The translations under genes and the position numbers were made by a program. DNA of 64,000 nt, from positions 454,644-518,643 of IMG/VR virus record IMGVR_UViG_3300017917_001342. One strand, given 5' to 3'. The notes beneath the pieces were generated by a model. It worked only from the letters and a program-made list of their open reading frames with translations. It searched no databases and was not told the origin of the DNA. This document shows positions 38,025 through 56,759 of this stretch, piece by piece; the stretch's first letter is position 1; each line of letters opens with the position of its first letter.

Positions 38025-38674
38025 CACTTTGCTTTGCAGGTCTACCAAGAATGTCTACAATCAGCACAGATAGCTGGCGTAGATTAATATCTCAACACCA
38101 TACAGATGTTTTTGTACATACTTGGGCTGATAATGATCCGCAACAGCTACAGCAATCTATTGCTGCAACCTATGCACCAAAAGAATTGATTGTTGAACAA
38201 CAACGTCAATTTGATACAGCTATCTATACTGATCGCATATGGGCATACCGTAGTTTTCCCAACAATGTATTGAGCATGTGGTACAGCATAGCACAGAGCC
38301 TACAGATGGCTGATAGATATGCTGCAAAATACAACATCACATATGATTATGTTTGTCGTGCTAGATTTGACTGGCACTGTAATCAATTTGATTTGCAACC
38401 ATTTGATGGCTTAACAGTACCAGATGATCCCGGTTTAAGTGGACATCATTTTCAACATAGAGGCCACTGGTATGTTGCACATAACGATCAATTTGGCTAT
38501 GGCAGCATGAATGTCATGCGCGATTATGGTGAGACCTTTTATCGCATACCATGGTTATATCAAATCGACAAAATAGACTTTTGCAGTGAATTATTCCTTA
38601 CAACAAATATGATTACAAAAAAAATTCCTGTAAAATTACAAAAGGGATGGGTTTATAGGATGGTACGCGAATGA
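38012..38674 (+). CDS. Putative glycan-related transferase (ALCFAG.PR family)
   Basis: Likely ATG at 38012; DVFVHTW, SMWYS, YDYV.R.RFD, NDQFGYG. Confidence 0.55.
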   Translation: MSRVALCFAGLPRMSTISTDSWRRLISQHHTDVFVHTWADNDPQQLQQSIAATYAPKELIVEQQRQFDTAIYTDRIWAYRSFPNNVLSMWYSIAQSLQMADRYAAKYNITYDYVCRARFDWHCNQFDLQPFDGLTVPDDPGLSGHHFQHRGHWYVAHNDQFGYGSMNVMRDYGETFYRIPWLYQIDKIDFCSELFLTTNMITKKIPVKLQKGWVYRMVRE

Positions 38675-39744
38675 AAATAGCTGTATATACAATTGCACTT
38701 AATGAAATAAAACACTGTGAACGCTGGGCAGAATCTGTAAAAGATGCAGACTATCGAATCGTTTTAGACACTGGTAGTACAGATGGTACAGTAGAAAAAC
38801 TGCGCGAACTAGGTGTAACTGTATACGAACAGCAGTTTACACCTTGGCGTTTTGATGTTGCACGCAATGCTGCATTGAATTGTGTACCAGAAGATGCTGA
38901 TATCTGTATAAGCCAAGACATGGATGAATTTTTAGAGCCGGGATGGCGTGCAAAAATGGAAGCAGTTTGGCAGAAAGGTCAAACTACTAGATTGGCTTAC
39001 ACCTATGTATTTGATTATAGACCAGGTGGTAAGAATGACGGCTATCGTATGGATAAGATTCATGCTAGACAGGGTTACGAATGGCGCAGGCCAGTGCATG
39101 AAACTGTATGGAGCACACTGAGTTACGAAAACATTGCAGAAGATCTGTCTATTGTATTGAATCAAATACAAGACAGAAACAAAACAACTCGCAGCAACTA
39201 TTTGCCATTGATGGCTATGGCCACAGCAGAAAATCCCAATGACAGCCAATTGAGCTTTTGGTATGGACGCGAGTTAATGTACGCAAATCAACATGAAGCT
39301 GCTATCACAGAATTGAAACGCTATCTTGATCTAGAAACCAGTCGTTGGCCAGTAGAACGTAGCGAAGCTATGATTTATCTGTCTAGACTAACAGACAGCA
39401 GCAAATTTGACTATTTGCACAGGGCATTGATCTGTGCGCCAGAACGCAGACAGGTATGGTTAGAACTTGCTAGATATTATTACAGTAAACAAGACTGGCA
39501 TGGATTGCTATGGGCCTGTGGTAGCGGGCTTGAACACAGCCGCAGGGACAACAGCTATCTTGATCATGCAGATGCCTGGGGCAATCAACTACACGATTTT
39601 GGAAGCATTGCAGCAGCTAACTTAAAATGGTACGAAAAAGCTGTGGAATGGTGCCAATTAGCGATAAACATACAACCAACTGATGATAGATTGCGTGCAA
39701 ACTTAAATTGGATGCAAAGCAAACTAGGAGAGATTTCAAAATGA
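38671..39744 (+). CDS. GT2 glycosyltransferase with C-terminal TPRs
   Basis: VLDTGSTDGT, F..ARN.AL, DMDE, VHE, TPR helices. Confidence 0.9.
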   Translation: MKIAVYTIALNEIKHCERWAESVKDADYRIVLDTGSTDGTVEKLRELGVTVYEQQFTPWRFDVARNAALNCVPEDADICISQDMDEFLEPGWRAKMEAVWQKGQTTRLAYTYVFDYRPGGKNDGYRMDKIHARQGYEWRRPVHETVWSTLSYENIAEDLSIVLNQIQDRNKTTRSNYLPLMAMATAENPNDSQLSFWYGRELMYANQHEAAITELKRYLDLETSRWPVERSEAMIYLSRLTDSSKFDYLHRALICAPERRQVWLELARYYYSKQDWHGLLWACGSGLEHSRRDNSYLDHADAWGNQLHDFGSIAAANLKWYEKAVEWCQLAINIQPTDDRLRANLNWMQSKLGEISK

Positions 39745-54800: not shown

Positions 54801-56759
54801 GTTCTAACTACCGATGGTGCTGGTAACCTAACATGGAGTGCAGGTTCAAGCGTTGCAGGGCAGTGGACTACAAATACCACAGTTGGCGGTAGCGGACTAG
54901 ACATTTATTATCCACCGCTGACTCAGATCAGTGGTAACGTTGGCATTGGTACCAGTGTAACTACATCAGTTGGCGGTAGTAATAACCTGTCAGTTGGCGG
55001 TAACGTTTATGTACGTAGACAGTATTTCGCCAACGCAAGCGATACAGTGACATCGCCTAGCTATTCATGGTTGGGATCACCAACAACAGGTCTATACGTT
55101 GTTGCATCTAATACTATCGGTGCTACTGCAAATGGCATCGATGCACTGCGTATAGGTCCAAACACTGGTAACACATCAGTTGGTGCAACTAACCAAATTG
55201 CAGCACGCGGTGACTTCTATGCAAGCGGTGCAATACAACCAAGCAACAGTGCCAACTCAGCAGATAATACAAAAGGCATAATCTGGGCAAGTAACCCAGG
55301 TGGTGCAAGTGGATCTGCTTGGGTGAAATGGTATAACGGCGGTTTCAGCAGCTTGTATACCACATTGGAAATTGGCACTGGCTCTGATATTAAGAGTGTG
55401 CTGCTATTCAACACATCTGGTAACGTCGGATTTAACGTAACTGTTCCAAACTATAAGATAGATGTTGCAGGTGATGTTAACGTAACTGGTACATATCGCA
55501 TTAACGGTACACCGATTGGTACAGGTTCGGGTACAGTTACAGATGTAGGTATGACAGTACCGGCATTCTTAAGCGTGACACCTGCAAGTATTACTACGAG
55601 TGGTACATTTGCAGTTTCGCTAAGTGGCACTGCATTGCCTGTAACTAGTGGCGGTACTGGTAGAACTGCTGCACTCACAACCAATGGTGTGATCTACGCA
55701 GCAAACACTACCACAATGACTACTACTGCTGCTGGTACTAGTGGTCAAATACTAACTGCCAACGCAAGTGGTATACCAACTTGGAGTAGTACACTGCCAA
55801 CAACTGCTGGTGTAACCAGTGTAAGTTTTGGTACTACAGGCCTTACCCCATCCGCAGCAACAAGCGGTGCAATAACAGTTGCAGGTACACTTGCTGTAGG
55901 TAACGGTGGTACTGGTGTAACAGGTGTACCAACCAATGGTCAGGTATTGATAGGTAACGGTACAGGCTATACCCTAGCAAGTATCACTGGCACTGCAAAC
56001 CAAGTAACAGTAACACCTGGTGCAGGTTCAATTACACTGTCATTGCCACAGGCAATTGCAACTACAAGTACTCCTACATTTGCAACATTGACTCTGAACA
56101 ATGCAACTGGTCCAGAACTAACACTATCTGGCGGTACAAGCAACTTCATATTGATGGCTGCGAATGGTACTGCGGCACCTGCATTTAGTACTAGAAGTGC
56201 TGGTACCAAAGTAGTTTATTGGGATGCATTAGGTGTAGCATCTGCAGATTATGCAGTAGGTGTGCTAAACGCATCTTCAAGACTATGGTATTCGGTACCA
56301 ACTACTGCACACGGATTTGGTTGGTATGGTGGTACTACACTAGTCGGTACACTAAGCGGCGCTGGTGCATTTGCTGTTACAGGCGAAGTCACTGCATACA
56401 GTTCAGACGAACGTCTTAAGATCAATGTAGAACGTATACCAAATGCGCTTGACAAAGTTCTAACACTGCGCGGTGTAACATTTGATTGGGATCAAGACAA
56501 AGCAGCTAAGCTAGACTTCTTCCCACGCAAAGACAAAGACGTCGGTGTTATTGCACAAGACGTACAGCGTGTACTACCGGAAGCAGTTAAGCAAGCACCA
56601 TTTGACTTTGATCCTGCTGAAGGTGTAAGTAAGAGTGGCGAGAACTATCTAACTGTTCAATACGAAAAACTCACAGCATTGTTAATCGAAGCTGTGAAAG
56701 AATTGAAAACAGAAGTTGACAGTTTGAAAGCTGAAATTGATCAGCTAAAAAGCAAATAA
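48855..56759 (+). CDS. Giant collagen-like tail fibre with C-terminal intramolecular chaperone (peptidase S74-like)
   Basis: 2634 aa; long Gly-X-Thr region; ten TDG.G.L.W modules; [33 protein letters not shown]. Confidence 0.88.
49028..51500 (+). repeat. Collagen-like Gly-Pro/Ala-Thr coding repeat
   Basis: ggt-ccw-acw / ggt-gcw-acw triplets over about 2.5 kb with one interruption near 51040-51230. Confidence 0.9.

Follow-up and report, generated by a model that had tools for sequence, protein, structure and literature searches.

A probable SgtA-type glycosyltransferase pair and its candidate collagen-like fibre substrates in a 518-kb phage

Introduction

Why would a phage carry two glycosyltransferases (GTs) a short distance upstream of giant collagen-like fibre genes? 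The question is raised by IMG/VR virus record IMGVR_UViG_3300017917_001342, of which we analysed a stretch of 64,000 nucleotides (positions 454,644 to 518,643; hereafter the window, in whose numbering coordinates are given unless stated otherwise). It encodes two enzymes, GT1 and GT2, that join a catalytic domain of glycosyltransferase family 2 to tetratricopeptide repeats (TPR), an architecture called GT2-TPR below, and fibre proteins with G-X-Y tracts rich in threonine. An earlier note, made from the sequence alone, proposed that the former glycosylate the latter. Papers on related phages assume other roles for GTs encoded beside fibre genes, namely DNA protection or host-surface modification (PMC10202952, PMC7029224), and in the literature searched we found no paper linking the GT2-TPR family to phage collagen-like fibres. 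We show here that likeness to the clostridial enzyme SgtA, predicted fold, co-occurrence across phages and pairing in bacteria all support the proposal. Taken together, sequence, model and analogy make it probable that GT1 and GT2 are SgtA-type enzymes, soluble and cytoplasmic, which O-glycosylate proteins and act on the collagen-like fibres of the phage.

The window is the right-hand end of a single viral contig of 518,643 bp with direct terminal repeats, a GC (guanine plus cytosine) content of 41% and a CheckV completeness estimate of 100%. Near-identical DNA, covering the stretch or part of it, occurs in 20 listed runs from 12 studies, all of them DNA metagenomes (ponds, fresh water) and none an RNA run. 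When 8.1 kb of the window was compared by Megablast with 50,697 phage records, no match was found, and the phage therefore has no close cultured relative at the DNA level. PHROG and Pfam scans of the window revealed phage structural genes, PhoH, a ClpB-like ATPase and DnaJ.

Results

Sequence and predicted fold of GT1 and GT2

Both enzymes match phrog_13126 with E values of 1e-88 to 1e-91 and are its sole members in the genome (Table 1). They are 38% identical to each other, and the model described below has a GT-A domain followed by a helical one, which confirms that they are GT2-TPR paralogues, as the earlier note had it. Relative to the Pfam cut-off for PF00535 (23.3 bits), GT1 lies above (29.2 bits) and GT2 below (17.1 bits), and the TPR matches by Pfam are weak. 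The ATGA overlap of the two genes suggests translational coupling. In a quick tree GT1 groups with alphaproteobacterial enzymes (SH-aLRT, the Shimodaira-Hasegawa-like likelihood-ratio support, 96) and GT2 falls in a separate clade; hence they are old paralogues, not recent duplicates. Three related contigs, L010, L011 and L013, retain an orthologue of GT2 as a second copy. L010 has a third, very divergent GT2-TPR copy (8381-9340 of that contig) between the 174-aa gene and the DUF7796 gene, two members of the operon described below. Two other genes of glycosyltransferase family 2 lie at about 301.3 kb and 314.0 kb of the genome under study.

An AlphaFold model of GT1 based on 20 homologues reached a mean predicted local distance difference test score (pLDDT) of 93.7, in which residues 1-165 form the GT-A domain and eleven TPR-like helices come after it. 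When this model was compared with the PDB by Foldseek, the glycocin peptide glycosyltransferases SunS and ThuS (7msn, 7msk) came top and aligned over the full length (E 4e-16, template modelling (TM) score 0.6). A sequence search of the PDB with GT1 returned only SunS (1e-4) and GmaR, the Listeria flagellin O-GlcNAc (N-acetylglucosamine) transferase (3e-3). SunS, ThuS and GmaR, at 16-19% identity, all modify peptides or proteins. GT1 is not itself a SunS equivalog, scoring 21 bits against an NCBIfam cut-off of 350.

Several motifs are invariant or nearly so among the 20 homologues: N11-E12, D33-T-G-S-x-D38, F61-D62..N66, D83-x-D85 and H143-E144. They include the residues expected of an inverting GT-A enzyme like those of glycosyltransferase family 2, with D33 and D38 (nucleotide-binding aspartates) and D83-x-D85 (the metal-binding DxD) invariant. 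Modelling GT1 in complex with 72 residues of collagen tract from the 2634-aa fibre scored 0.00, with no controls, and counts neither for nor against the proposal.

These matches bear on the possibility that the enzymes modify the host envelope (lipopolysaccharide, teichoic acid or a surface protein), blocking superinfection or changing serotype, and that they sit near fibres only as part of a variable host-interaction island. This is the usual reading of GTs beside tail-fibre genes in aquatic phages (PMC10202952, PMC7029224), and the wall-teichoic-acid enzymes TarS and TarP are among the fold matches of GT1. Yet they match the GT-A domain alone and rank far lower than ThuS and SunS, whereas the full-length matches are peptide glycosyltransferases; moreover, we noticed no membrane segment on reading the sequences of GT1 and GT2.

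A closer counterpart is SgtA of Clostridioides difficile, a protein of 358 aa with ten cysteines, in which a GT-A domain (residues 1-260) precedes four TPRs at the C-terminal end (PMC7157674). Its gene lies immediately upstream of bclA3, and with UDP-GlcNAc as donor the enzyme attaches beta-O-GlcNAc in vitro to the threonines in GPT-repeat peptides (PMC7157674). We searched 301 genomes of the order containing an Anaerovoracaceae carrier of the family and found an SgtA-like open reading frame (ORF) of 361-362 aa, with 10 cysteines, in two Peptostreptococcales genomes of 4.2 Mb and 29% GC (family profile match 1e-16). The ORF directly downstream of it has 112-154 G-X-Y triplets, most of them G-P-T. 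GT1 aligns with this SgtA-like protein end to end (residues 1-349; 24% identity, E 3e-16), with all motifs in register.

The collagen-like proteins

The earlier note placed collagen tracts in four ORFs, with threonine "almost always" at Y. All four ORFs are there, with uninterrupted G-X-Y tracts, but "almost always" is an overstatement. When every run of at least four G-X-Y triplets is taken, threonine occupies Y in 161 of 227 triplets of the 2634-aa fibre (71%, with serine in 22 more) and in 25 of 32 triplets of the 1440-aa fibre (78%), compared with 8 of 16 (50%) in the 672-aa and 7 of 17 (41%) in the 354-aa protein. Threonine at Y is thus predominant and far above chance in the two large fibres, on the + strand, and accounts for about half of the positions in the two small proteins, on the - strand; it makes up 8% of the residues in the long ORFs of the genome. 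The X position of the tracts in the window is mostly proline and alanine.

The two large proteins score above the Pfam cut-off for Collagen (PF01391) and match many PHROG tail-fibre families. At the C-terminus of the 2634-aa protein is an intramolecular chaperone of the endosialidase type (Pfam Peptidase_S74, E 3e-16), whose SDERLK autocleavage motif occurs at residue 2517; this combination is the hallmark of a trimeric fibre, which the protein is accordingly predicted to form. The 1440-aa fibre has orthologues with 68% identity in L010 and L011. Beyond the window, the genome has four more Thr-type collagen ORFs, at genome positions 16843-20832 (-), 114419-116869 (-), 246418-248295 (+) and 248308-251229 (+), with 203, 35, 76 and 183 triplets, respectively; none is near a GT of phrog_13126.

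The composition of the largest fibre could also point to a different acceptor. The enzymes might glycosylate the virion elsewhere, either on Ser/Thr-rich parts of the fibres or on the capsid or tail tube. The 2634-aa fibre has Ser/Thr-rich beta repeats of the STSTTTG type and 14.7% threonine outside its collagen tracts; in phages PaBG, Lu11, NCTB and Y3 the GT gene sits in the head/tail structural module, far from collagen genes; and mycobacteriophage GTs decorate the capsid and tail-tube subunits of their own virions, according to the account of Freeman et al. 2023 given in PMC12619734. On the other side, the homologous SgtA works on GPT peptides, and the results of the next two sections show a preference for Thr-type collagens that such acceptors would not explain. 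We judge glycosylation of other virion parts unlikely.

Linkage and co-occurrence with threonine-type collagens

A scan of IMG/VR with the family alignment gave at least 486 relatives, of which we used the best 80 loci with up to 10 kb on each side. Thr-type collagen ORFs were found within 10 kb upstream of the GT at 31 of 39 informative loci and downstream at 4 of 42 (p 7e-11). The asymmetry holds within 2 kb (26/61 upstream, 2/74 downstream; p 7e-9) and after collapsing the GTs at 70% identity (15/27 and 3/28; p 5e-4). Almost all upstream collagen ORFs (55/56) are on the strand of the GT, with a median gap of 834 bp. The best annotated match, the cultured actinophage DSL-LC01, has a giant fibre, two collagen genes and two others, then the GT. 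In some phages (viral records G028:C1:54597-56972, G018 and G010) the GT2-TPR module is inside a longer open frame of 586-797 aa, which suggests fusions to extra domains, and fusions of GT2-TPR with Methyltransf_21 also appear among the protein matches.

Co-occurrence of GT2-TPR genes with GPT collagens across phages, which the earlier note had proposed as a check, proved strongly positive and specific to Thr-type collagens. Among GT-bearing viral records of at least 30 kb, 36 of 40 have a collagen match above the Pfam cut-off, compared with 2 of 50 records sampled by a random 14-mer (p 3e-18). All five cultured or named GT-bearing phages tested (PaBG, Lu11, NCTB, Erwinia Y3 and DSL-LC01) have several collagen ORFs each.

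In the reverse test, records were sampled by a pattern and the GT was then searched at E <= 1e-20. It was present in 14 of 43 records sampled by a (GPT)3G coding DNA pattern, including 5 of the 10 that were at least 90% complete. None of the 50 random 14-mer records had it (0/7 of those at least 90% complete; p 5e-6), nor did any of the 36 records with non-Thr collagens, where Y is Gln, Lys, Pro, Ala or Asp (0/7 of those at least 90% complete; p 7e-5). The latter sample was drawn with a pattern of four G-P-(non-Thr) triplets and filtered on the composition of the collagen ORF, the pattern having also caught GPT antisense. A control based on PhoH had yielded 15 loci only, mostly close relatives, and the random 14-mer sample was used instead.

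Given these frequencies (14/43 against 0/36 and 0/50), the GT family is tied to Thr-type collagens and not to collagen-like fibres generally. This is the expected outcome if threonine is the acceptor. Both of the alternatives presented so far fit it poorly: acceptors elsewhere on the virion would not account for the GT being in a third of the GPT records and in none of the non-Thr ones, and a role at the host envelope would predict an association with fibres generally. We therefore favour Thr-type collagen fibres as the likely substrates of GT1 and GT2, as far as comparison of sequences can tell.

Independent recurrence in phages and bacteria

The GT and the collagen genes might instead travel together as a fibre cassette, or simply mark lineages, with no enzyme-substrate relation. 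Many of the 80 viral loci indeed have neighbour genes in common, for example those of WhiB-type actinophages, and their GTs merge into 4 clusters by single linkage at 50% identity. Grouping the 80 loci by common neighbours put 79 in one single-linkage group and was uninformative on independence. Complete genomes with both the GT and GPT collagens speak against such hitch-hiking. Five of 46.6, 57.5, 61, 64 and 112 kb (40-62% GC) and the 518-kb phage have almost no genes in common; two are mutually related, and for most pairs the GT is the sole common gene. They still pair it with GPT collagens, in varied arrangements (upstream, downstream, opposite strand).

The pair also recurs in several bacterial phyla. 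Among the best 80 loci with homologues in GTDB, 43 include a Thr-type collagen ORF, whose end is usually 100-200 bp 5' of the GT. These 43 loci belong to Clostridia, Bacilli, Alphaproteobacteria and Actinomycetota, and in all four groups a collagen-like gene repeatedly stands immediately before a GT2-TPR gene or a tandem array of two or three. SgtA and BclA3, an experimentally proven pair, have the same layout. Overall, it is very improbable that the association reflects hitch-hiking.

A Mesorhizobium homologue is instructive for the other alternatives. In Mesorhizobium sp. CP083956.1, a GT with 48% identity has as its neighbour an uncalled ORF longer than 1612 aa (positions 1-4836 of the extracted locus L092, - strand), with a globular N-terminal region and then about 370 G-A/S-T triplets in which threonine fills 367 of 371 Y positions. 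The GT belongs to a cluster that also encodes a 1246-aa TPR/Gly_transf_sug protein, a GT25/GT1 protein and an FkbM methyltransferase, from which the giant ORF is divergent. This company of other GTs and a methyltransferase could be taken as a sign of envelope modification, but the cluster itself flanks the giant (GAT)n protein, and superinfection exclusion is irrelevant to the bacteria in which the pairing occurs. We thus regard modification of the host envelope as quite improbable. Bacterial partner proteins that are almost pure (G-A-T)n likewise argue against acceptors outside the collagen tracts.

A sugar operon around the glycosyltransferases

GT1 and GT2 terminate a tightly packed + strand operon of about 34.5-41.0 kb with several gene overlaps of 4-19 bp, closed by a strong hairpin (Table 1). 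The operon block is 54-80% identical in two related contigs and 34-57% identical in a 329-kb contig, where the RuBisCO-like gene alone is missing; this gene is present in two relatives and absent from L013. Across relatives, the nucleotidylyltransferase, the DUF7796 protein and the two GTs are kept at 35-80% identity. A scan for sigma-70 promoters found 46 sites, about the number expected from shuffled sequences (44.3), and no late-promoter motif that could be named; the description of the two paralogues as late-expressed in the earlier note has no support in the sequence.

Several products of the operon point to sugar metabolism. The nucleotidylyltransferase resembles a nucleoside-diphosphate-sugar pyrophosphorylase (PDB 4evw), with weak NCBIfam matches to GlmU, MurU and RmlA, and is by sequence a probable donor-sugar activating enzyme. 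The RuBisCO-like protein keeps the KPK and K-E-D-E motifs, but the loop-6 lysine and the arginine after the histidine of HxxxH are replaced (alignment read by eye), so it looks RuBisCO-like and not a carboxylase. The DUF7796 protein has no sequence-level match to any PDB chain. Its model gave BoGT6a (4ayl) and the human ABO transferases as top Foldseek hits (E 4e-6, TM score 0.50-0.55, 9-14% identity), and on this basis it is a probable glycan-extending enzyme resembling the retaining GT6 type. Its gene is also directly 5' of GT1 in L010, L011 and L013. A protein-atlas search for look-alikes of the DUF7796 and 174-aa proteins returned unannotated viral clusters only, with no Pfam family near the 174-aa protein. 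The DUF7796 family is almost purely viral and otherwise uncharacterised.

This setting also bears on the idea that the GTs modify phage DNA by a glucosylation-type hypermodification against restriction. The role is common among phage GTs and has been suggested for relatives (PMC10202952). Here, the operon has no base-hypermodification genes, the enzymes have a TPR domain and the fold of peptide glycosyltransferases, and the linkage is to collagen genes; DNA modification is barely plausible.

Neighbouring genes

Divergent from the operon are genes for a ClpB-like double-AAA+ ATPase of 764 aa (30723-33017, -) and for a DnaJ with a J domain and a C-terminal domain (33529-34401, -), a placement kept in the three relatives. 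The two may be folding helpers for giant fibres. Two giant ORFs have zero matches in Pfam and PHROG, one of at least 2392 aa that runs past the contig end (56824-63999, +) and one of 1592 aa (22176-26954, -). Further away, the window has a GC-rich island (8001-10000; 0.51, with about 0.40 around it) in which two ORFs of about 400-425 aa overlap fully on opposite strands (8800-10077, +, and 8827-10023, -); the former has no family match. A DUF2201 metallopeptidase/VWA-like protein with the PHROG label HNH endonuclease is encoded at 7460-8743 (-), and a radical-SAM protein at 1762-2997 (-).

Table 1. Features of the window discussed in the text (window coordinates).
Feature	Position	Strand	Evidence and remarks
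Collagen-like protein, 672 aa	27024..29042	-	16 triplets; no Pfam match; PHROG collagen/tail-fibre matches
Small collagen-like protein, 354 aa	29056..30120	-	17 triplets; Pfam Collagen E 4e-5, below cut-off
First operon gene	34320..35198	+	No family matches; conserved part from about residue 67 (67-292 in L010, L011, L013)
Sugar-1-phosphate nucleotidylyltransferase (predicted), 240 aa	35257..35979	+	Pfam NTP_transferase 8e-11; PDB 4evw 2e-16; kept in relatives
110-aa operon protein	35966..36298	+	phrog_24762; kept in L010, L011, L013
RuBisCO-like protein, 407 aa	36295..37518	+	Pfam RuBisCO_large 2.5e-39; PDB 2cwx 1e-41; below all NCBIfam cut-offs
174-aa operon protein, phage-only family	37500..38024	+	phrog_34507; kept in L010, L011, L013
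DUF7796 protein, GT-A fold (model)	37934..38674	+	Pfam DUF7796 9e-10; likely start about 38012; AlphaFold 2 pLDDT 92.9
GT1, GT-A (GT2 family) + TPR glycosyltransferase, SgtA/SunS-like, 357 aa	38671..39744	+	phrog_13126 E 3e-88; Pfam GT2 family; AlphaFold 2 model
GT2, paralogue of GT1, 354 aa (counted from ATG)	39741..40805	+	phrog_13126; ATG overlaps GT1 stop
Hairpin terminator, strong, bidirectional	41000..41025		11-bp stem, 6 GC pairs, then T run; after 58-codon ORF 40822-40998
Two virion structural protein genes	41866..43190	-	Between GT operon and fibre operon; phrog_13138 E 3e-39, phrog_12928 E 4e-39
Collagen-like fibre, 1440 aa	44081..48403	+	Start of fibre operon, separate from GT operon; one G-X-Y tract, residues 151-246, then large tail-fibre-like body; Pfam Collagen E 3e-12; phrog_17885 E 2e-76
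130-aa ORF between the two large fibre genes	48416..48808	+	Conserved
Collagen-like fibre, 2634 aa	48855..56759	+	18 G-X-Y tracts, residues 65-885; Pfam Collagen E 2.5e-61; Peptidase_S74 E 3e-16; PHROG tail-fibre families

Discussion

Our results suggest the following mechanism. GT1 and GT2 would combine an inverting GT-A catalytic domain of family GT2 with a TPR domain that binds the substrate. During virion assembly they would use a nucleotide-sugar and put the sugar on the hydroxyl of Y-position threonines (perhaps serines) in G-X-Thr repeats. The targets would be the two large fibres (1440 and 2634 aa), whose genes lie just downstream, and probably also the remaining six collagen-like proteins of the phage. 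The nucleotidylyltransferase may activate the sugar-1-phosphate, the GT6-like DUF7796 protein may extend the first sugar, and the RuBisCO-like protein might remodel a phospho-sugar. The resulting fibres would be long, trimeric and covered in O-glycans. Four elements of this scheme are inferred: which residue accepts the sugar, what the sugar is, how GT1 and GT2 share the work, and what the phage gains. As for the gain, stability, adhesion or shielding (from protease or antibody) is speculation.

Several observations weigh against glycosylation of the collagen tracts by GT1 and GT2. The two genes are 3.3 kb from the nearest collagen gene, in a separate operon, with four opposite-strand genes between. 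The Ser/Thr-rich non-collagen repeats of the fibres could be the true acceptor. Related freshwater phages account for many of the 80 viral loci, whose counts are therefore not fully independent. The SgtA-like ORF is 24% identical to GT1 and was equated with SgtA by its published description, not by name, on the grounds of length, cysteine count, neighbouring gene, genome size and GC content. Finally, about two thirds of the viral records with GPT collagens lack the GT, including 5 of the 10 complete ones; threonine at Y alone therefore does not imply phage-encoded glycosylation.

One may go further and see in the eight-gene operon a self-contained glycosylation factory, which makes its own, possibly unusual, nucleotide-sugar by means of the RuBisCO-like protein and the nucleotidylyltransferase and builds an oligosaccharide on hundreds of Y-position threonines of the fibres with two SgtA-like initiators and a GT6-like extender. 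The pair of GT2-TPR enzyme and Thr-type collagen would then be a widespread and unrecognised module of hundreds of phage lineages and several bacterial phyla. We put this forward tentatively, and in its entirety it is doubtful.

Phage virion glycosylation has so far been documented in few systems, mainly the capsids and tail tubes of mycobacteriophages. The data presented here suggest a different and testable role, O-glycosylation of Thr-type fibres, for a large GT family (IMG/VR has at least 486 relatives and the protein collection 3094). If true, this would explain the dominance of threonine at Y in many phage and bacterial collagens, and how triple helices might be stable or shielded without hydroxyproline. 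It would also change the annotation of host-recognition islands in abundant freshwater phages and provide enzymes for glycosylated recombinant collagens. The cultured carriers PaBG, Lu11, Erwinia Y3 and DSL-LC01 make the idea testable.

How does this system compare with those already known? The BclA protein of Bacillus anthracis, a GPT-repeat collagen-like filament whose threonines are O-glycosylated with rhamnose-anthrose glycans, was the model chosen in the earlier note. The phage proteins are not BclA-style in the strict sense: they have no BclA C-terminal domain, and the families they matched were only Collagen and Peptidase_S74 in Pfam and tail-fibre families in PHROG. They are tail-fibre-like proteins that resemble BclA functionally, not as family members. 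In animals, the cuticle collagen of Riftia has galactosylated threonine at Y, which stabilises the triple helix without hydroxyproline.

Other viruses and bacteria offer partial parallels. Mimivirus is a precedent for a virus that glycosylates its own collagen-like fibres (e.g. PMC9546862), but with hydroxylysine-linked glucose and galactose and eukaryote-like enzymes. As in our proposal, mycobacteriophages encode GTs that modify structural proteins of their own virions in the cytoplasm of the host; in the account given in PMC12619734, the sugars go to the C-terminal ends of capsid and tail-tube subunits, and a collagen-like acceptor is not involved. SunS, ThuS and GmaR have in common with GT1 the active-site motifs and a GT-A domain joined to a helical TPR-like domain that binds the peptide or protein substrate. 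They differ in their substrates, which are small helical bacteriocin precursors (modified at Cys or Ser) or flagellin, and their sequence identity is low, as given above. The operon partners of GT1 and GT2 are sugar-metabolism-like proteins.

SgtA is a closer precedent than Bacillus BclA. Like SgtA, with its roughly 358 residues, GT1 and GT2 are single chains of very similar length in which an N-terminal GT-A domain is joined to C-terminal TPRs; the NE, DTGSTD, FxxARN, DxD and HE motifs are common to GT1 and the SgtA-like ORF. Unlike the SgtA/BclA3 pair, the system is phage-encoded and would target tail-fibre-like virion proteins, not spore proteins. It has two old paralogues, whose operon also encodes a nucleotidylyltransferase, a RuBisCO-like protein and a GT6-like enzyme, and its GTs are separated from the fibre genes, whereas in relatives and bacteria the two are usually adjacent. 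In our view it thus amounts to a phage-borne variant of the SgtA/BclA3 system for O-glycosylation of Thr-type collagens, one that would act on tail-fibre-like virion proteins and is set in a larger sugar operon.

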